Positions 19,287-31,431 of a stretch of 64,000 nt of DNA are shown here, one piece after another. Location: positions 11,160,001 to 11,224,000 of the forward strand of contig CP075495.1 in assembly GCA_021613535.1 (NCBI GenBank), in the 5' to 3' direction. The stretch comes from Adineta vaga. Taxonomy: Eukaryota > Animalia > Rotifera. A program made the translations under genes and the position numbers. The notes below the pieces were generated by a model. The model was not told where the DNA came from. It saw only the letters and a program-made list of their open reading frames with translations, and did no database searches. How positions within the stretch are numbered: the first letter of the stretch is position 1; every line of letters begins with the position of its first letter.

Positions 19287-20953
19287 TTAAAGTTGCCGAT
19301 TACGAATCATATGAATAATTTCGGAATCAGCTGAACGAGCTGCACCAGCGAAAAATAAATTTTCAATTCCTTTAATACACCAACCACGTATAGGTGGCAT
19401 TCGAAGAAGTAATTTAGCAAAACGTGCTACATCATCGCTATGGACCTTTTTACAATATGAGGCTAATGACATACAAACTTTTTCACGTAATTCCGATACT
19501 CGAGAAGTATCAACAACATCTTTCGCATCTAAGAATAGGAAAATTTACTTTTATAGAATGATGAATATCTAGATACATACCTGGATCAAAAAGAAATATA
19601 GCCTTGAGACATGTTATTTCAACTTTATCAACATTTAATTCACGCATAATTGTTACAACATCATGATAGAGGCGTGTGATAAAAAATTGAAGAGATTGAT
19701 CTACAGCTGTATGTGGTCGAACATAAGAACCATCCTAGAGAAATAATATATATATATATATATATGAGATAGTTAAACTATGATTAAATATTAAATTAAA
19801 TAACTAACCGATAGAATAAGTCCACAATCTGGTGCCATAATAGATCTGTAAGCAAGTGAACAACAAAGTATATCTCTCCATGAAGCTCTGACTAGTGCCA
19901 CTTGATCATCAAGAGATAAAGTAGAAAAATGAGGTACGCGCTTGGCCCAATCCGTTAATTGTGCTAATTGAGAATTAGTTGTTGATAAAAGACGATCGTA
20001 TGAACAATCTTCTTCGTGGAATGAATCAATTTTTGGTTCAACAGATAATTCAGCAGCAATCAATTTTTCAACTAACATTTCATCATCTGTATGAGAACCA
20101 GATGAACCAATACCCGTATTCGTATTTGTACTACCACTGCCAATACTTGCACTAGGTGATGAAGGTGATTCACCATCACCACTCATACCAGACTTTTGTC
20201 GTTCTTCTTGAACGGCTAAATAGAAAAGATTTTAGTACAAAAATAAACATCGTCGATTTATTGACTTCTTACCTTCTTTTTTCATACCAACAGTGATGCA
20301 TTTTTGATAACGACAATATTGACAACGATTACGTTGTCGTTTATCAATAATACATTCACGATTATCTCGACATGTATATGTTAAATCTTTTCGTACCGTA
20401 CGTTTAAAAAATCCTTTACATCCTTCACAACTAAACATAGAGAATAATTTAAAACTCAAGAAATTCATTTCTTTTGTATATTTTTCACAAACCTATGAAC
20501 TCCATAATGTTTGCCTGACGCTTTATCGCCACAAATAGCACAAGCATATTTCGATGCAGCATTTAAACTCATTCCACCACTTGTTGTAGCTGTTGGTGTT
20601 GAACTAGTTGAAGAATTTGAATTACCACCAATTCCTCCAAATTGTCCACCGCATGACATTGGTACTAGAAATTCATAACAAAGTATTGTCTCTCTCTCTC
20701 TCCGTAGATATCTTGTTTCTGTTTCATACCTGGACTTAACGATGTTGGTGAATCACCTCCTGAGCCACTGGAATAATTCGAATTACCACTTGTATGTTGT
20801 ATAGCTCCATTCTGCAATTGGTTAGTAACATCCATCGGCGGTGAAAATGTTCCATTATCACCATAACTAAAACCTATGAAAAATAAGAATATTGTTCGAA
20901 AAATATGTTGTCTCTTTTGTTTTATATAAATATTTATTACTTGATTCCGACAT
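19287..20953 (-). CDS. RXR: Retinoid X receptor (NR2B) with divergent ligand-binding domain
   Basis: [64 protein letters not shown]-box [33 protein letters not shown] and [10 protein letters not shown]. Start modelled at 20953 (ATG TCG GAA TCA A|gt). Confidence 0.92.
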
Positions 20954-21079
20954 CAGTTTAATTCATTAGATAATAAGAAAAATCAATAAATATAATCTAA
21001 AAAAAAGCGAATTACAATCAAAAAAGCTTGTTCCCAAATGATTGCGAGAAAAAAAATGAATCAAATTTTCTTGAAATAT

Positions 21080-21745
21080 CTAATAATTCGATGTAGATGG
21101 AATGTCTTTCATTAAAGCAATACCGGATGATGTTCCAAGACGTGTAGCACCGGCTTGAATTAATTCTTTTGCAAATGCACCATCTCGTATACCACCAGAT
21201 GCTTTTACTTGCACATTTTTCGGTGAATATTGCCGTAATAATTTGATATCATCTAATGTTGCTCCACCTGTTGAAAATCCGGTGGAGGTTTTTATAAAAT
21301 CGGCTCCACCATCTCCTACTATTTGACATAGCTTTTGTTTTTCACCTTCACTCAATAAACATGTTTCAATAATAACTTTTAAAATTTTATTTTCACCGGA
21401 TGAATGAACTAATTTTGCTAATTGTTCAATTTCATTTTGTACGTATTCAAAATCACCATCTTTTACTTTACCAATATTAATAACCATATCAATTTCTTGT
21501 GCACCATCATCCAATGCTTGTTGACATTCGAATAATTTCGTTTGTGTCGTTGTTGCGCCAAGGGGAAAACCAATAACAGTACAAACACGGACTTGATATT
21601 TTTCGGTAACATATTTCACGTGACATGGTTGAATACAAACAGTTGCAAATTTATGCTCCGTTGCTTCTGAACATAACTGATCAATTTGTTTTAATGTTGC
21701 ATCAGGTTTCAATATAGTATGATCGATGTAAGCGCTTGTCAACAT
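21080..21745 (-). CDS. deoC: Deoxyribose-phosphate aldolase, short bacterial type, intronless
   Basis: IDHTILKP, VCTVIGFPLG, GAQEIDMVINIG, LKVIIET, ADFIKTSTGF (Schiff-base Lys), VKASGGIR, GATRLGTS and C-terminal Tyr; 221 aa. Confidence 0.96.
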   Translation of the reverse strand: MLTSAYIDHTILKPDATLKQIDQLCSEATEHKFATVCIQPCHVKYVTEKYQVRVCTVIGFPLGATTTQTKLFECQQALDDGAQEIDMVINIGKVKDGDFEYVQNEIEQLAKLVHSSGENKILKVIIETCLLSEGEKQKLCQIVGDGGADFIKTSTGFSTGGATLDDIKLLRQYSPKNVQVKASGGIRDGAFAKELIQAGATRLGTSSGIALMKDIPSTSNY

Positions 21746-21847
21746 AATTACTTACTTTGACTTTTTTTTCTTCTTCTCCTTCTATTCCCCAAGAATTCTT
21801 TTCTTTGACTGGCTTTCTTTTGAAGGTCAACAAGGACGGGCATCTTC

Positions 21848-21884
21848 ATTGGCTGATTTTTAATTACCAATGAATTTCAATTGG
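21848..21884. promoter_or_regulatory. Three CCAAT boxes, putative shared deoC/RXR promoter
   Basis: ATTGG at 21848-21852 (AGCCAATG on minus strand), CCAAT at 21867-21871 and ATTGG at 21880-21884, about 100-140 nt upstream of the deoC ATG. Confidence 0.45.
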
Positions 21885-23873
21885 ATCAATTTTATTCGAC
21901 AGTAGAGGGCGCTTAAGGAAGTTAAGATAGAAATGCTTTTTTTTCTACAATGTTTAATAGAAAATAAATGGTAAAAGGCGTTTTTCTTCAGTGTGATAAT
22001 AACTAATAGGTACTATTCGTTATTATAAATAAATAGAAGAAAACCAACCATAGGTTGAAAGAATGTCTATCCTATATCTCATCTTTGTTAGGTAAGAGAG
22101 GATAAAATATTAAAAGAAAAGAACAGAGACACTAAATAAGAATGATAATGTAATGTCTTTTATTCTTCATAACAGTCATTTTTAATAAATTGTGCTATTA
22201 ACATTTGTAAAAGGGATAAACTATTACTTACATGTTCTTTTTCTCCTTCACATCATACTTGAGTGATGAAGTTTTACTCTATAATCATGTTTGGTATACA
22301 TCTGTATCAACTATGGAAATACATTTTAATCAATACAAGAGCCAAACATTTAAAAAAAGATGTTCTTTGTCAACTTTCTTTTAAAACATCAGAAGTATAT
22401 GAAAAAAAAGTTTCAACAAAATTGATTATAATTTAGAAATAATTTTTTTTGAAAGTGTAAAATGATGTTTTAATTATATCTTCACAAAGAAAGAATCTTT
22501 TAGGCGTTAGTTAATAAATATCTTCTTTTATATTAAATTTATGAAGAAGAAAAGTATGCTATATAGGAAGTTCACAAAGAAGGTTCATATGATAAATTGC
22601 GAACGGGTACAATAATAATAACCATGTTGTGAAAGAAAGAAAGAAAAGAGAGCTGCTAAAATTTCTATAAATAATAATATTTTACCGATCTTTTGTTCAA
22701 AATTCGTCATACGAAATGGATTAAACTATGAAAGCGATGAGATTAGTCATTCGTCTATAATTGAAAGAAACGTGACTTAGTTTTCACTAAATATTCTCAA
22801 AAAAGATTGATGAATTCCTACATATTCATTTATACCTCATTATCAATTTACAAAAGACAGGAAATTTTTGTCAGATTGAAAAGAAGACATGTATAATCTA
22901 TGAACAAAAAGGCATGACATTTTAATAACTATTTCTCATAAGCATGCGCTTTCTCCTAAAATAAAATTTATCTTTCAAAGAACATCATAGTTATATGTAA
23001 CTTTGAAAATACCTAAGTATATAGATGCTTAATTAAACGCAATATTGTTCAATAATAAGTTAAATTAATAATAATGTCAGTCGAATAAAACAAATAGAAA
23101 ATGTGTGATTTTGTTTTTTTGAATTTCATAATTGATATTAAATTCACAAAAAGTTCGCTTAGTTTGTTTCAAATGTGTTTCATGTCTCACTGGGGTTATT
23201 AGTAAGAATCTACTTCTAACTTCGTTGACAGCTTGAACACTTGTTAATAGGAATTATCGAGATAAATATTATTCTTTTTCTTTTACTGTACGTATCTTCT
23301 AATGACGACGATGATAATAAAAATGAACATAAATCTTCTCAAAATAGAATAAATTTTTTTATTAATGAATCAACGCTAATCTTTGTATGTAATAAATAAA
23401 CATGCTTATTTATTGAACGAATTTTATTGCTGCACTTACATCCAATTTCAATGAGAGGAGATAAACTAGATGGATTACTTGTATTCTCAAATATTTCAAT
23501 AATCGTTAACTAAGTCACAGAAAGATGACAGAAAATATCTTTATCGTTGCACTTAAATTTCACTTTATACGATAAAAAATGAAAACTAATGTTCATTGGC
23601 ATTGAAATCAAACGATCAACTCATTTGTATTTTTTATCTTTTATGTCAGTTTTCATCGAGTCATTCAGTTGTATTCACGTTAACCTTGTTATGCAACAGA
23701 TAAATATCGCTACTAAACATGAGTGATTCATCGATACAAATCATTATCCCATGCATTTTTCTTATCGTTCGTCACTTCGAACGACATAAACAAATGTGAA
23801 AGATACCTCCTAATAGCATGATATACGAATATAGATAAGAAAAAAAAACTTCAATACAGCTATACATATTGCA

Positions 23874-26426
23874 ATGAATAAACTAACATTCATAAACACT
23901 CATCCTGAATGTTAGTATTTAGTCTTTTTTTTCCTCATTAATAATTATTTACCTGTTTTGATTAGATGGATACAACGGATTAATCGATCAAGTCTATGAG
24001 AAAGAATTTTCATCTCGTCTTCCTGTTGATCGAATATATCTCGATCATGCAGGTACAACATTATATACTCAATCTCAATTAGATACTCATTTTGATCAAC
24101 TTCGTACATCAACATTAAATAATCCTCATAGTGAACAAGATGATTCGAAAACATTATTATTAATTCAAGAATGTATGGAATTTATCTTGTCAATATTTGA
24201 GACATCAAGTCGAGACTATTCAATTATATTTACCTTAAATACCACTCATGCATGTCAATTATTATCGACATTATTTCCATTTTCATCTCAATCTGAATAT
24301 GCTTATATGATTGATAGTCATAATAGTCTCATTGGTATTCGACAACAAGCTAAATTACATGGAGGCTCATTTTCTGTTATTGATTATCCATCATTTATTT
24401 ACAATCAACAAAAAGATCTAGATCATCATTCATCTTTTCACTGTGTTGGTCATTCATCATCATCTCTACCATTGAATTCGGAATCTACAATTCCATCCTA
24501 TTGTTTATTTGCATGTCCAGCTGAAAATAATTTCAATGGACTTCGACCAGCATTAAATCAACTTTTAGAACCTTTTCTAATTGCACGAGAAAATCTTTCA
24601 GAATCTTTTCCAATACCAGTAAAACGTCAACCATCCAAATCATGCCATTGGTTAACATTAGTTGATTGTGCAAAATATCTTTCAACAAAATCTTTTTCAC
24701 TTTCAACATATCCTGTTGATTTTCTTGTTCTTTCATTTTATAAAATCTTCGGTTATCCCACTGGTCTAGGTGCATTAATTATTCGAAATGATACATTGAA
24801 AATCTTGAATAAAGAACATTATTTTGGTGGTGGTAGTGTTGAATATGTTTCACCTTATGATGATTCTCGTGTTGATTATAAATCGAATATAAATGCTTTT
24901 ATTCATGGAACAATTCCATTTACGAGTATTCTCTCTGTTTATCATGGTTTTCAATTAATTACATCAAAATTAACATATAAATCGATATCATTACATACAC
25001 AATGTTTAATTGATTATTGTCGAAATGAAATGTGCCAATTAAATTATTCAAATGGACAAATTCTTTGTCTATTTTATGATCAAAGAAATGATTTGTTGAG
25101 AGAACATGGTTATTCTTATGGGCCAATTTTAAATTTTAATTTATATAATAAACATGGTCAATTTCTTTCTTGTCGTTTAATACAAAGAATTGCAGCTGAT
25201 CATAATATTATTTTACGAGTTGGAACATTTTGTGCACCAGGTGCTAGTCAAGCTTATTTAGGTAAATCTGTAAAATAGACGATTGAAAAAAGAAGATATT
25301 GTTTTTAGGTTCGAGAAAATCATTTGAAACAAATCATGAATGTCGTCGAGGATTATTCTGCGGAACGAATCATGATGGTGAAGATGTCATTGATTCTGGT
25401 CAACAACCACTAGGTAGTATTCGTTTAAGTCTTGGTTGGATGAGTCGTTATGAAGATATTCAAACATGGATTAATTTTCTTCGTCAAATTATTTTACAAG
25501 GAATTGGTATAGCACCATTATTACCATCATCAATAGAGAATAATAATGTTTTTAATGAGAATATAAACTTGATGTTAACTCATATGTATATTTATCCAAT
25601 AAAATCTTGTGCACCGTTGTCAGTAACAGAATGGCCATTGACATCAATTGCGTTTCTTTATGATCGTGAATGGATGATTATTGATCAAAATAATAATCCA
25701 TTAACATTGAAGCGTTTACCAAGTTTATCTCAAATAAAACCTTTTATTGATTTAAAACAAAATCAATTAATACTCAATGCGAATAATCATTCATCTTTCA
25801 TTATTAATATTAATAATGGTTTGTCTTCGGAAAGATATTATCTTTGTAATTCACTTGATTTATATTTAGATTTCGAAATTATTAAATCATCTGTCAAATT
25901 AAATGATGGAATAGCTTGTCATATTTATTCAGGTGAAATTGAACAATGGTTAACTCGTGTATTGGGTATTTATGCAACATTAGCACGACGTACAGTAGAT
26001 AGTCAAATGACGTTAGCAAATGAAGGTGCTTTTCTTCTTGTATATCAAGAAAGTGTTCGACAAATCCAATCTGAATTGACCAATAATGAAAAGATTACAC
26101 ATGAACGTTTTCGACCAAATTTAGTTGTTGATAAACAAAATTTTGATCAAGTTTATTCAGCCTATAGTGAAGATTTGTGGAAACGCTTGATTATTTCTAA
26201 CGAAAATCAAATTGAATTGAAAACAAGTGGTTTATGTCAACGTTGTTCAGTAGTTAATGTTGATCCATTGACTGGAAAAAATCAAAGTCATCTATTTACT
26301 CGTTTACAAACACAACGAAGAGAAATGAATTCATTACGAGCAAATTTTGGAATTCTATTGAATCTTTCGAAAATATATAAACTTGCTTTCATCCGTGTTG
26401 GAGATCGTATTCAAGCATTCAAATGA
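23874..26426 (+). CDS. MOCOS: Molybdenum cofactor sulfurase (NifS-like PLP domain + MOSC domain)
   Basis: IYLDHAGTTLY, NPHS, HNSLIGIR, LSFYKIFGYPTGLGAL (PLP Lys), GSIRLSLG, MOSC IYPIKSC, YDREWMI, RFRPNLVV, CQRC. The first exon (23874) is a hand model. Confidence 0.93.
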
Positions 26427-26872
26427 TTGAAATTGATTTTCTTATATAGATTTTGATATACAAAGACTATTAAAGATATGAATAAAATGATTCTAGGCCG
26501 ATAATTTTAAACAGAAAATGATCGAGTGCACATGATTCTAGATGTCATATCGATAGAGAATAAAAGTATATCTATCCCTGGATGAAGAGAATTTTCGAAT
26601 CAATTTATAGATAGAGAATGAAAAGCAGTTTCTTTCGTTTCTACGCAAAAATTTTAAAAAGTCGAATTTGAACTGATAGTATCTGCTCACATTCACACTT
26701 TTGATAAAGCAACATGCGAAATATTTCTTATCTTTGTTTCATTATTTGCTCTGAGATAAACTATTAGTCTATATTTTCTATTCGTACTCACGTTTAATTA
26801 TATAAAAATACAGAAGGCTGAGAGAAACAGAAAAAAAACTGATTAAACTTGTGTGACTTGAAAAGAAAAATA

Positions 26873-29800
26873 ATGGTTAAAGAAACAATACAACAGTCCA
26901 CACCTCCACCAGTAGATTACCTTCTATTCTATGTTAATGGAAAACAAATCATTGAACATCATGTAGAACCTGATTGGACTCTCTTATGGTACCTTAGAAA
27001 TAGTAAGTATAGTATTGTTATTTTTTCAGTTGATGATGATTCGATCTTAAACTTTCATTTATTATTAGAGTTGAATTTAACTGGATCGAAATTAGGTTGT
27101 GGTGAAGGTGGATGTGGCGCTTGTACAGTAATGATATCTCAATGTATGGATCGACATTCGGGTTATCTTGAACATCGAACAGTTAATGCTTGTCTAGCAC
27201 CAATTTGTTCTGTGGATGGTTGTCATATAATAACAGTTGAAGGTTTAGGTTCAGTTGCTAAATCAAATCTTCATCCAGCACAATCACGACTAGCTGAAAT
27301 GTATGGATCACAATGTGGATTTTGTACACCTGGTATTGTTATGTCATTATATGGAACTGTAACATCATCGAATCATCCTCATTCATCATTAACAATGCAA
27401 GATATTGAAGAAGCATTTGATGGAAATCTTTGTCGTTGTACAGGTTATCGACCTATTCTTGATGCTGCTAAATCATTTGCAAAAGATACTAATAAATTAC
27501 CATGTAAAGATTCATTCTCATCATCAAAGCCAACATCAACAACATTGGATAAATGTCTTTCATTCGTGAAAAAACTTGATAAAGAACCTCATCAAATAGA
27601 ATTTCCCAATGAATTACGTCAACATATTCCACAATCAATTCATATTAAAGGTTTAATGATATTTTTGCTTCTCTGATCAAACTATTTTTTCTACATTTAT
27701 ATATACATATATATAGGCTCGATAGTTGAATGGTATCGTCCGATAACTTTGAATGAACTACTTGAACTTCGTTGTACGTATCCAGGTGGTGCATCAAAAC
27801 TCGTTTTTGGTAACACAGAAGTTCAAATTGAAACAAAATTCAAACGTTTAAAATATCCACGGTTTATTTCTGTAACACATGTCGAAGAACTTCAACAAAT
27901 GAAACGTACATCAACAGCTTTAATTATTGGTGCTGGCGTTACCTTAACACGTTTACAAACTAAACTTTCCGAATGGAATGATCAGAAGTTAGATGGTGGC
28001 ATTTGTCAGGCTCTTATTGATCAATTAAAATATTTTGCTTCAACACAAATTCGTAATGTTGCTTCACTTGGTGGTAATATTGTTAATGCTTCACCTATGT
28101 AAAGATTAGTTTTTCTATTCTGTATTTGCCAAACGAAAATTTTTCTATTTCTAGTTCCGATGTTAATCCAGTTCTTCAAGCTGCTGATGCTGTTTTAGAA
28201 TTACATCGTGGTAATCTGATTCTGTTCGGCTTGTTCCTCTACGAGAATTTTTTCTGAGCTATCGTCGTGTGGCAATGACTGATGATGAAGTACTAGTTAG
28301 TATTCATATTCCATTGCCATCAACGAATAAAACATTTATTCGTTCATATAAACAAGCACGTCGACGTGATGATGATATTGGTATTGTTAGTGCTGGTCTT
28401 CATGTTGAACTTGAATCTATAGATTCTACGGATAAACAACAATGGCGTATTGTTTGTGCACGATTTTCATTTGGTGGAATGGGACCAACAACAATCTTAA
28501 CAAAAAAGACAGAACAAGAATTAATTGGACAAACTTGGTCAAAATCAACTATTAATAAAGCATGTGAATTAGCATTGAATGAAATGCCATTGAATGATTT
28601 AACACCTGGTGGTCAACCAGAATATAGGTAAGATATAAGTATAAAAAGATCATAGTTGAATGTTAGAATGTTTCTATTTAGACGTACTTTAGTTCAATCA
28701 TTTTTATACAAGTTTTATGTTTATATTTGTACGGAATTGAATCAATCAAATGTTGATACAAAAGAACTTTCAATTACTCATCCATATCATCGACCTGTTT
28801 CTCATGGTCAACAGATAATTCCAGAACGACCATCATCACAAAAAGTTGTTGGAACATCATTACCTCATCGTTCAGCATATCTGCAAACAACAGGTGAAGC
28901 AAAATATATTGATGATATGCCTTCATTACCTAATACACTTTATGCTGCACTTGTACTTTCAACGCAACCAAATGCTCGAATTAAGAGTATTGGTAAGCTG
29001 ATTTCCTAGCCGCTTGACAAAATCATAATCATACACTTTCATTGTTCTATAGATCTAGGTGCAACTTCGAAAGTGCCTGGTTTTGTTTCATTTACTAATC
29101 ATAAAGATATTCAAGGTGATAATATGACTGGTGATATTGTTCATGATGAAGAAGTCTTTGTTTCATCAATAACTCCATGTGTTGGTGCGGTCATTGGTGT
29201 CGTTCTATGTGAAACAGAACGTGCAGCATATGCTGCTACTAATCTTGTTCAAATTGAATATGAACTTTTAACACCAACTATTTTCACAATTGAAGATGCT
29301 ATTGAACATAATTCATATCTAGGTGATGAACGATGTTTGAAACAAGGTGATGTAGAAAAAGCTCTAACAGAAGCTGAACATACACTTGAAGGAACTATTT
29401 TAATGGGTGGTCAAGAACATTTCTATCTTGAAACAAATTGTTGTATGATTATACCATCCAATGATGATCAAGAAGTTACTATATATTCATCGACACAAAA
29501 TCCAAGTAAAACACAAGAACTAACAGCATTAGCACTTGGTTATGATGTTAGTCATGTTATATGTCATGTTAAACGTATGGGTGGTGGATTTGGTGGAAAA
29601 GAATCAAGATCGTATGTTTAATAAAATAAAATCGATGTCTAATCCTACTTTTTTTCAATTTAGAATTGCTCCATGCATTGCTGCAGCCGTCAGTGCTGTA
29701 AAAGTTGGTCGCCCTGTTCGAATGAATATTGAGCGTGATGTTGATATGAGTGTTACTGGTCAACGTCATCCATTTAAATTGACATATAAAGTTGGTTTTA

Positions 29801-31431
29801 CGAATGAAGGTCAATTTACAGCACTTGATATTCGTTTATGGAGTAATGCAGGATGTTCATTTGATCTCTCACTACCAGTGCTAGAACGCGCAATGCTTCA
29901 TATTGATAATACTTATCGATTTAATAATATACGAGTTCGTGGACGTTTGTGTAAAACACATTTACCATCAAATACAGGTCTGTTTTGTCATCATATTTTA
30001 TTTCATCAAAATCTGATTCGAAATTATTTTATAGCATTCCGTGGTTTTGGTGGTCCACAAGGTCTATTTGGTTGTGAAACAATTGTTGAACATATTGCTG
30101 CCTATCTTAAACTTGATCCTCTTATCATTCGTCGTTTAAATATGTATAAAGAAGGTGATGTAACCCATTTTGGTCAACCATTAGAACGATGGAATATACC
30201 TCGAATGATCGACGAACTTTTAATATCCAGTGATTATCAACAACGACAAAAAACAGTGGAAGAATTCAATCAATTGAATACTTTTAGAAAACGTGGTATT
30301 ACTATTCTTCCAACAAAATTTGGTATTGCATTTACAGCTAAATTTCTAAATCAAGCTGGTGCTCTTGTTCATATCTATAAAGATGGGTCAGTTTTAGTTA
30401 GTCATGGAGGTAAAGAAAATACAAGAGATTACTCACACATCTTCTTTTCTTTTGCTTTCTAGGGACTGAAATGGGTCAAGGACTTCATACAAAAATGATT
30501 TCTATTGCAGCAGAAATTCTAGGATGTGATGTTAATCGAGTACGTATTAGTGAAACAGCAACCGATAAGGTAGCAAATACAAGTCCAACAGCAGCATCAG
30601 CATCATCCGATTTAAATGGTATGGCAATAAAAATTGCATGTGACCAAATTCGTGAACGTTTAAATACACCTTCTTGTTGGTGATGATATCAATATATCAT
30701 GGGAAAATCTTGTTAAAAAGGCATATTTTTCACGTATTGATTTATGTGCACATGGCTTCTATGCTACACCTGAACCATTAGGTGCAGATTTTCTGACGAA
30801 TGAAGCTAATTTTAATTATTTTACACAAGGTGCAGCTGTAACAGAAGTCGAATTAGATACATTAACAGGTGATTGGCATATATTACGTGTTGATATTTTG
30901 ATGGTAAATTCAAGAGAAAGATTTTCATTTCTTTTTCACATTTTTGTTTTCGAATTCTAGGATGTTGGAACATCACTTAATCCTCAAATTGATATTGGAC
31001 AAATTGAAGGTGCTTATGTTCAAGGTGTGGGTTTATTTACAATGGAAGAACTTATTTGGGGTGATCATAATCAACATAAATGGACAAAACCAGGTGCTCT
31101 TTTTACTCGTGGTCCTGGTACTTACAAAATTCCATCCTTCAATGATGTACCACTTGATATGAGAGTAGAATTACTTTCGAATGCAGCTAATCCTCGTGCA
31201 GTTTATTCATCGAAAGCAATTGGTGAACCACCTCTATTTCTTGGTGCTGCAGCATTTTTTGCACTTCGAAATGCTTGTATGGCTTATCGAGAACAACAAG
31301 GTTATAAAGAATATTTTCCTTTAAATTCTCCAGCTACTGTGGAACGTCTTCGTATGGCATGTGCTGATGAATTTACTCAACGAGCATGTATTCAACAACA
31401 TGAAACATTTCAAGCAAAAGGTTCTTATTAA
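26873..31431 (+). CDS. XDH: Xanthine dehydrogenase/oxidoreductase (multi-exon)
   Basis: Fe-S motifs [39 protein letters not shown] domain [21 protein letters not shown]. Moco domain [36 protein letters not shown], with the XDH-type Glu/Arg/Glu retained. Apparent 1-nt indels near 28213 and 30670. Confidence 0.96.

Follow-up and report, generated by a model that had tools for sequence, protein, structure and literature searches.

A bacterial-type deoC gene ahead of an RXR nuclear-receptor gene in Adineta vaga: a candidate operon-like pair meeting at a splice acceptor

The deoC and RXR genes and the junction between them

The window analysed here is a stretch of 64,000 nucleotides of the bdelloid rotifer Adineta vaga (GenBank assembly GCA_021613535.1, contig CP075495.1, positions 11,160,001 to 11,224,000 of the forward strand), which lies on contig C2 of a six-contig, 100.8-Mb assembly. 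It holds an intronless, bacterial-type deoC gene for deoxyribose-phosphate aldolase (21080..21745; 666 nt, 221 aa) and, on the same strand, a retinoid X receptor gene, RXR-A (19287..20953), whose ATG lies 126 nt past the deoC stop. Both genes, and all features of the locus described below, are on the minus strand. The deoC mRNA ends at a conserved 3' splice site just ahead of RXR-A, and we lean towards an operon-like pair with zero intercistronic gap that is resolved by spliced-leader trans-splicing.

The 3' splice site (20997..21020) consists of a branch-point-like TGATT (21020-21016), a pyrimidine tract (21010-20999) and an AG (20998-20997). The AG follows nine T and lies 83 nt past the deoC stop and 43 nt ahead of the RXR ATG at 20953. 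On the other side of deoC, a GTAAGT donor-like hexamer is read in the sequence at 21755-21750; after it come aatt and the deoC ATG (21745), so that the hexamer starts 10 nt 5' of this ATG. The span from donor to acceptor is 759 nt, from GTAAGTAA to TTTTTTTTAG. An earlier, sequence-only reading of this DNA had placed the donor, deoC, the acceptor and the RXR start at these positions, and re-reading the minus strand confirmed all of them. At the level of sequence, the deoC open reading frame (ORF) indeed lies between a donor and an acceptor, 759 nt apart, that belong to the host gene. Neither AATAAA nor ATTAAA occurs between the deoC stop and the AG, in agreement with the same reading, which had reported no AATAAA there.

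The deoC 3' untranslated region (3'UTR) carries the motif CGCAATCATTTGGGA (21032..21046), which reads GCAAT[CAG]ATT... in all A-type (deoC-linked) loci. Genome-wide it has 111 matches at no more than 2 mismatches, versus 23 for a reversed control, and it could be a candidate 3'-end or processing signal. The RXR 5' leader (20954..20996), of which an RNA contig from the X5 run reaches 20978, contains a two-codon upstream open reading frame (uORF), ATGAATTAA (ATG AAT TAA; 20958-20966), which ends 4 nt ahead of the RXR ATG. The uORF is found as ATGAAWTAA/G or ATGAACTAA in all A-type taxa and is missing from the leaders of RXR-B, a second RXR without deoC; it may control RXR translation.

The deoC product gave a full-length domain match to PF01791 (Pfam, E = 1.8e-17) and matched the DERA structure 8qps in PDB (1.4e-64), in an alignment that includes the KTSTGF and VKASGG motifs, and it is thereby predicted to be a DeoC/DERA class I aldolase. 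Its best match is the DeoC of Adineta ricciae (90% identity), and the closest relatives outside rotifers are bacterial (54-60% identity). In a quick tree the nine bdelloid deoC sequences formed one clade, with support 99, among bacterial sequences. The gene is single-copy in the A. vaga genome and its GC content agrees with that of the host. Between taxa dN/dS is 0.03-0.11 at a dS of 0.6 to >2. By these comparisons deoC appears to be a functional, long-resident gene under strong purifying selection.

One deoC has a different setting. In Didymodactylos carnosus (L006:5001-6499) the gene is 60-62% identical, carries a 767-nt intron and sits downstream of a bacterial-type ILVD/EDD dehydratase gene, and no RXR lies within 600 nt downstream of it. 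This could be either another context of the same ancient transfer or a separate transfer. Given its intron and the lack of RXR in that interval, the locus was set aside as a guide to the deoC-RXR arrangement.

RXR-A has seven coding exons (20953-20941, 20873-20730, 20664-20493, 20430-20273, 20215-19809, 19734-19581 and 19528-19287), separated by introns of 67, 65, 62, 57, 74 and 52 nt, whose RNA-contig junctions were refined to GT..AG. The start codon and the 13-nt first coding exon (20953-20941) are backed by RNA-contig junctions and by conservation. The exons match the zf-C4 (PF00105) and ligand-binding (PF00104) domains. Identity was searched with a natural intron-free orthologue ORF (L023:884-2155), which is 83-87% identical to rotifer proteins named 'Retinoid X receptor', 50% to Brachionus RXR and 42-52% to animal RXRs. 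With a C4 zinc finger, a ligand-binding domain and these best matches, the downstream gene is assigned, as a prediction, to the RXR/USP nuclear receptors (NR2B).

RNA contigs across the junction and the spliced leader

The RNA evidence comes from Logan contigs of four runs, each belonging to a different study. Such contigs can merge overlapping transcripts, and they can lose rare isoforms and short tips, including the 23-nt leader. Two contigs from different A. vaga studies, X1 (2633 nt) and X20 (2638 nt), must be RNA-derived because all six RXR introns have been removed from them. Both run unbroken from 20939 across the intergenic region and deoC, to 21769 in X1 and to 21752 in X20. Contigs of two other bdelloids, L023 (JGI) and L036 (Logan), are likewise bicistronic and intron-free, with the DNA or RNA origin of L023 ambiguous. 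Continuity from the upstream to the downstream cistron is seen in all four of these contigs, which are not single molecules. The part of the deoC 5'UTR covered by RNA contigs is 21746..21769 (5' ends at 21769 in X1, 21768 in X6 and 21752 in X20), and RNA fragments extend up to 21783. Further upstream, the contigs gave no RNA coverage over 21932-23671, and therefore no other transcription is seen upstream.

The 3' end of the deoC mRNA falls exactly on the acceptor. Contig X6 spans 21768-20996 and then continues with 18 non-templated A (T18 on the plus strand). The tail directly after the AG shows that the deoC mRNA is polyadenylated there, with the addition site (20996..20997) falling on the base that directly follows the AG. 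The deoC poly(A) site, which the sequence-only reading had marked as worth mapping, is thus located at the acceptor AG itself. The upstream poly(A) site lies close to the presumed trans-splice site, with A18 after 20996, and the intercistronic distance is the short 126 nt from stop to ATG.

The sequence-only reading had proposed that RNA spliced from 21756 to 20996 encodes RXR. Under this model a short deoC 5'UTR exon (ending at 21756/21755) would be joined to 20997/20996 with a 759-nt intron taken out, and unspliced RNA would be the deoC mRNA. A perfect GTAAGT donor and a strong acceptor speak for it. However, the 21756 to 20996 joint was absent from the contigs of the four runs, which show all six RXR introns and from which rare isoforms may drop, so the proposed spliced RXR message was not seen. 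The intron would also be about ten times as long as the other introns of RXR (52-74 nt).

The second way to form the 5' end of RXR is trans-splicing. The rotifer spliced-leader sequence was taken from PMC3795323, and the A. vaga genome has 42 copies of the spliced-leader RNA gene, ending ...CTTACCAAGAG/GT. Most of these copies form inverted head-to-head pairs with about 156 nt between them, and large clusters lie on C5 and C2 (e.g. G000:C5:9884354-9925971).

Leader sequence was found at the junction in the environmental contig L023 (JGI24214J29971_1013966; 2914 nt), which comprises a 5'UTR, deoC, a 167-nt spacer, intron-free RXR and a 3'UTR. At L023:799-809 the 11-nt 3' end of the leader, CTTACCAAGAG, is fused to the RXR leader, replacing the pyrimidine tract and AG of other taxa. 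The fragment could come from the assembly of a leader-bearing RXR mRNA or be a genomic relic of cDNA recombination. Whichever its origin, L023 appears to put the spliced leader at the homologous junction in one lineage. That the whole 18 nt of GGCTTTGCTTACCAAGAG in L023 might be a decayed full leader was considered and rejected, as its GGCTTTGCTT part aligns with the native 3'UTR of L036 and other loci; the assignment is confined to the 11 nt of CTTACCAAGAG. Five RXR-only contigs (L031-L035) from an organism 99% identical to that of L023 start 39-80 nt 5' of the RXR ATG, and the longest of them, L031, begins AGAG/ATTT. A scan of metagenome contigs for an exact pattern of leader tail, RXR leader, uORF and ATG together gave no matches; the pattern was too strict, because L023 itself departs from it at one base and its leader is longer.

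It might also be supposed that the mature bicistronic RNA is the functional RXR message, with ribosomes reaching RXR past deoC by reinitiation or internal entry. Bicistronic contigs from which every RXR intron is gone, assembled at good depth, and the conserved two-codon uORF ahead of the RXR ATG would fit this. Reinitiation after a 221-codon ORF is inefficient, however, and the deoC mRNA ends at the AG, while RXR-only RNA contigs exist both in L031-L035 and in the X5 run. This reading also offers no reason for the conserved splice acceptor and is considered highly improbable.

Conservation of the arrangement and the promoter blocks shared with RXR-B

The gene order, with MOCOS divergent from deoC and RXR following deoC, is kept in A. 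ricciae and Rotaria socialis, and deoC followed by RXR is also found in the environmental bdelloids L007/L008, L015, L019-L021, L023 and L036. Contigs L007, L008, L009, L014 and L015 are genomic, not RNA, and were used for comparison only. All readable A-type loci keep the TGATT, the pyrimidine tract, AG/AT, the GCAAT.ATT... motif, the uORF and the 13-nt first coding exon. The 3' splice site is kept in the A-type genomic loci of A. ricciae, Rotaria, L007/L008, L009, L015, L019-L021 and L036. Because the acceptor, the TGATT, the leader uORF and the promoter blocks described below are kept across taxa at near-saturated deoC dS (0.6 to >2), these features of the locus go beyond chance.

The donor behaves differently from the acceptor. 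GTAAGT is identical together with its flanks in A. ricciae (L002) and L009, and is GTAAGC with near-identical flanks in L007/L008. In contrast, the same position reads GTTAAT in Rotaria and is without GT in L015, L019, L023 and L036, so that outside Adineta-like taxa the donor is not conserved along with the arrangement. Conservation in related genomes, which the sequence-only reading had proposed as a check, therefore holds across genera for the linkage, the acceptor, deoC and RXR, but for the donor only in Adineta-like taxa, and the homologous copy on C5 is without deoC. Selection keeping some GT donor in every A-type 5' region was also considered and set aside, as a purine-rich stretch of about 90 nt should contain about one GTRAG-like hexamer by chance (our own estimate).

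Upstream of deoC several blocks are conserved. Promoter block 1 (AAGCGCCCTCTAC; 21902..21914) contains GCG.CCTCTA, which is invariant in alignment A3 and also present in alignment A1. The CCAAT boxes expected upstream of deoC were found within 21848..21884, as CCAAT at 21884-21880 and at 21852-21848 with an inverted ATTGG at 21871-21867 between them; the proximal C(C/G)AATGA block is conserved and its C.AAT is invariant in A3. The TTGACCTTCAA block (21820..21830; TGAAGGTCAA on the opposite strand) has TTGACC.T.AA invariant across A and B loci, and is a putative extended nuclear-receptor half-site by comparison with the known TNAAGGTCA consensus. In the form TTGACCTT(C/G)AA, or T(G/C)AAGGTCAA on the opposite strand, a putative extended half-site of the ERR / FTZ-F1 type lies 5' of both RXR paralogues. 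Nearest to the RNA contigs, the initiator-like CCAGTCA (21806..21812), with a CAGT block conserved in A loci, is a putative transcription start region.

The paralogue RXR-B lies on C5, is 82% identical in the hinge and ligand-binding exon, and has no deoC upstream. Alignment A3 joins five RXR loci with deoC (A) and three without it (B; L030, L024 and L025). In it GCG.CCTCTA, C.AAT and TTGACC.T.AA are invariant and co-linear across A and B loci. As these blocks are shared with the region directly 5' of RXR-B, the ancestral promoter of RXR-A would lie upstream of deoC. The alignment thus indicates that deoC is placed downstream of the RXR promoter and upstream of the first RXR acceptor.

These findings bear on whether deoC and RXR-A might be two independent genes, with a weak RXR-A promoter in the deoC 3' region or in the 126-nt intergenic region, with or without leader addition at 20996, and with the bicistronic contigs arising from read-through or assembly merges. 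The X5 run yields deoC (21700-21027) and RXR (up to 20978) as separate contigs, a conserved motif sits in the deoC 3'UTR at 21046-21032, and contigs are no proof of single molecules. Against this, the homologues of the RXR-B promoter blocks sit upstream of deoC and not between the genes, the acceptor follows the deoC stop after just 83 nt, k-mer continuity over the junction is found in four independent data sets, and the tight linkage is kept across genera. Independent genes therefore seem rather unlikely to us.

The B loci also give a view of the history of the intron. At the A. vaga RXR-B locus (L030; G000:C5:8212630-8213743) the promoter blocks lie about 90 nt ahead of the acceptor with no GT donor between, and RXR-B of A. 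vaga likely has a leader-dependent outron. In L024, an environmental RXR-B orthologue, GTGAGC stands in the alignment column of the Adineta donor; next come aaga and ATGTTGACAA, the latter the same as the first 10 nt of deoC, and the acceptor lies about 40 nt further on. A. vaga RXR-B and L025 are without this donor. Comparison of L024:520-590 with RNA contig L037:1-50 showed that a short 5'UTR intron (about 55 nt) is cis-spliced out. The deoC-like remnant suggests that deoC was lost by deletion from RXR copy B. We hold with moderate confidence that a 5'UTR intron or outron with this acceptor is older than the A/B duplication, and, with similar moderate confidence, that deoC was probably already inside it at the duplication and was later deleted from copy B.

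For cis-splicing across deoC, the evidence from other taxa is divided. The identity of the donor and its flanks in A. ricciae and L009, and their near-identity in L007/L008, persist despite saturated dS, and in RXR-B the intron spliced in L037 has the homologous donor (GTGAGC in L024) and acceptor at its ends. On the other hand, the donor is GTTAAT in Rotaria and lacks GT in L015, L019, L023 and L036, while acceptor and linkage persist there. Together with the missing 21756 to 20996 joint, this leaves cis-splicing unlikely as the source of the RXR message. The intron architecture proposed by the sequence-only reading is accordingly borne out in part: a homologous donor and acceptor pair is cis-spliced in the paralogue of one lineage, but the 759-nt cis-splice was unseen at the A. 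vaga locus.

An operon-like reading, its parallels and its meaning

Contig continuity, promoter homology and conserved linkage support that deoC and RXR come from one transcription unit. The earlier phrase 'one promoter, two unrelated products' finds support in the bicistronic contigs, the block homologous to the RXR-B promoter and the linkage in Adineta, Rotaria and environmental bdelloids. The alternative that the sequence-only reading had itself allowed, spliced-leader trans-splicing with an operon-like layout, fits the data better than its cis-splice. In the operon-like explanation, one ancestral RXR promoter (GCGYCCTCTA, CCAAT and TTGACCTT blocks, 21914-21820) would drive deoC and then RXR, and the conserved 3' splice site at 20998/20997 would be the switch point. 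Cleavage and polyadenylation exactly at 20998/20997 would give the deoC mRNA, and use of the same position as a splice acceptor would turn the downstream part into the RXR mRNA, whose 5' end would most likely come from the 23-nt bdelloid spliced leader by trans-splicing. A minor cis-spliced route, starting from the GTAAGT of the deoC 5'UTR, may exist besides in Adineta-like species. Such a route is compatible with the operon model and would explain the conservation of GTAAGT there. The use of a single promoter and leader addition at 20996 in A. vaga are what we infer from these data.

Several points weigh against this explanation. De Bruijn contigs may merge overlapping transcripts, and bicistronic contigs are no proof of single molecules started at the deoC promoter. 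GTAAGT is perfectly kept in Adineta-like taxa despite saturated synonymous divergence, which hints at its use, and the homologous intron is cis-spliced in the paralogue (L024/L037). Leader addition at the acceptor, which the sequence-only reading had named as the sign of an operon-like arrangement, may be reflected in the leader end at the homologous L023 junction but not in any A. vaga contig: those found are without leader joined at 20996, although such contigs probably lose short leader tips to clipping. The leader fragment of L023 is just 11 nt long and sits in an environmental contig whose DNA or RNA nature is ambiguous. Finally, a review states that operons are unreported in rotifers (PMC7986045). 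With these points counted, the operon-like pair resolved by trans-splicing remains the reading that we favour, with somewhat better than even confidence.

A further, bolder version was considered, in which trans- or cis-splicing at the AG would itself form the deoC 3' end and the released RNA would be polyadenylated without AAUAAA, so that a foreign intronless gene could be expressed by landing in a host outron or 5'UTR intron. Both deoC and RXR would then arise from a single processing event, each depending on the other; the arrangement would have become fixed ahead of the genome duplication in bdelloids, and the pair would be the first operon documented in rotifers. This version is speculative, and we regard it as quite doubtful.

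The closest parallels to the operon-like pair are zero-gap operons, which form the 'SL1-type' class in C. elegans. Ciona operons have no intercistronic gap, use a single spliced leader and show a median intercistronic distance of 1 bp (PMC7986045). As in Ciona/Oikopleura and the SL1-type operons, two same-strand genes would lie behind one upstream promoter region, and the upstream poly(A) site is 0-1 nt from the downstream acceptor. As in Ciona/Oikopleura, the organism has one spliced leader for monocistronic and downstream genes. Unlike in these tunicates, leader addition at 20996 in A. vaga is inferred rather than observed, and the content is atypical for an operon, with deoC a horizontally acquired bacterial-type gene and RXR a developmental transcription factor.

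The sequence-only reading had compared the locus with the cholinergic locus, where VAChT lies in the first ChAT intron (unc-17/cha-1). The analogy holds in that an ORF of unrelated function is placed after a shared promoter with its 5' non-coding region and ahead of the first acceptor of the downstream gene, with a donor and an acceptor flanking the nested ORF at the sequence level. It fails in other respects: the shared-exon splice of the cholinergic locus is documented and its products act in one pathway, whereas here the cis junction was not found in the contigs, the donor is not kept across genera and the deoC mRNA ends exactly at the acceptor.

In trypanosomes genes are generally polycistronic, and poly(A) sites lie upstream of the acceptor, not on it; the present case is instead a single gene pair in an animal with ordinary promoters. 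A likeness exists to coupled trans-splicing and polyadenylation in trypanosomatids, where, according to a preprint (bioRxiv 10.64898/2026.10.18.760011), the 3' end of the upstream mRNA is placed without AAUAAA by the downstream pyrimidine tract and acceptor. The deoC 3' end likewise lacks AAUAAA and is set at the downstream tract and acceptor. L023, with a partial leader in line at the acceptor and intron-free RXR, resembles the relic spliced leaders of recycled cDNAs in dinoflagellates, although its match covers 11 nt only and its origin as DNA or RNA is ambiguous. Our literature searches found no description of leader relics in rotifers.

Divergent to deoC-RXR lies a MOCOS-XDH pair (23874-31431, plus strand), and MOCOS also stands beside deoC in A. 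ricciae (L002:1-3267) and Rotaria (L003:1-416). As MOCOS-XDH adjoins deoC, a nucleoside-catabolism gene sits beside purine-catabolism genes.

Bdelloids are unusually rich in foreign genes and also employ spliced-leader trans-splicing. A link between the two has been proposed without being demonstrated (PMC6053224), and deoC-RXR offers a concrete, testable case. Across bdelloid families a bacterial-type metabolic gene lies within the transcribed 5' part of a key nuclear-receptor gene; deoC would use the RXR promoter, and RXR is apparently rescued by the acceptor directly downstream of deoC. If the operon-like reading is true, it would be a documented operon in Rotifera, a phylum in which the 2021 review lists none (PMC7986045), and, beyond tunicates and nematodes, an animal case in which poly(A) site and splice acceptor coincide. 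By implication, the expression of deoC and RXR would be transcriptionally coupled, which bears on the regulation of RXR in bdelloids.

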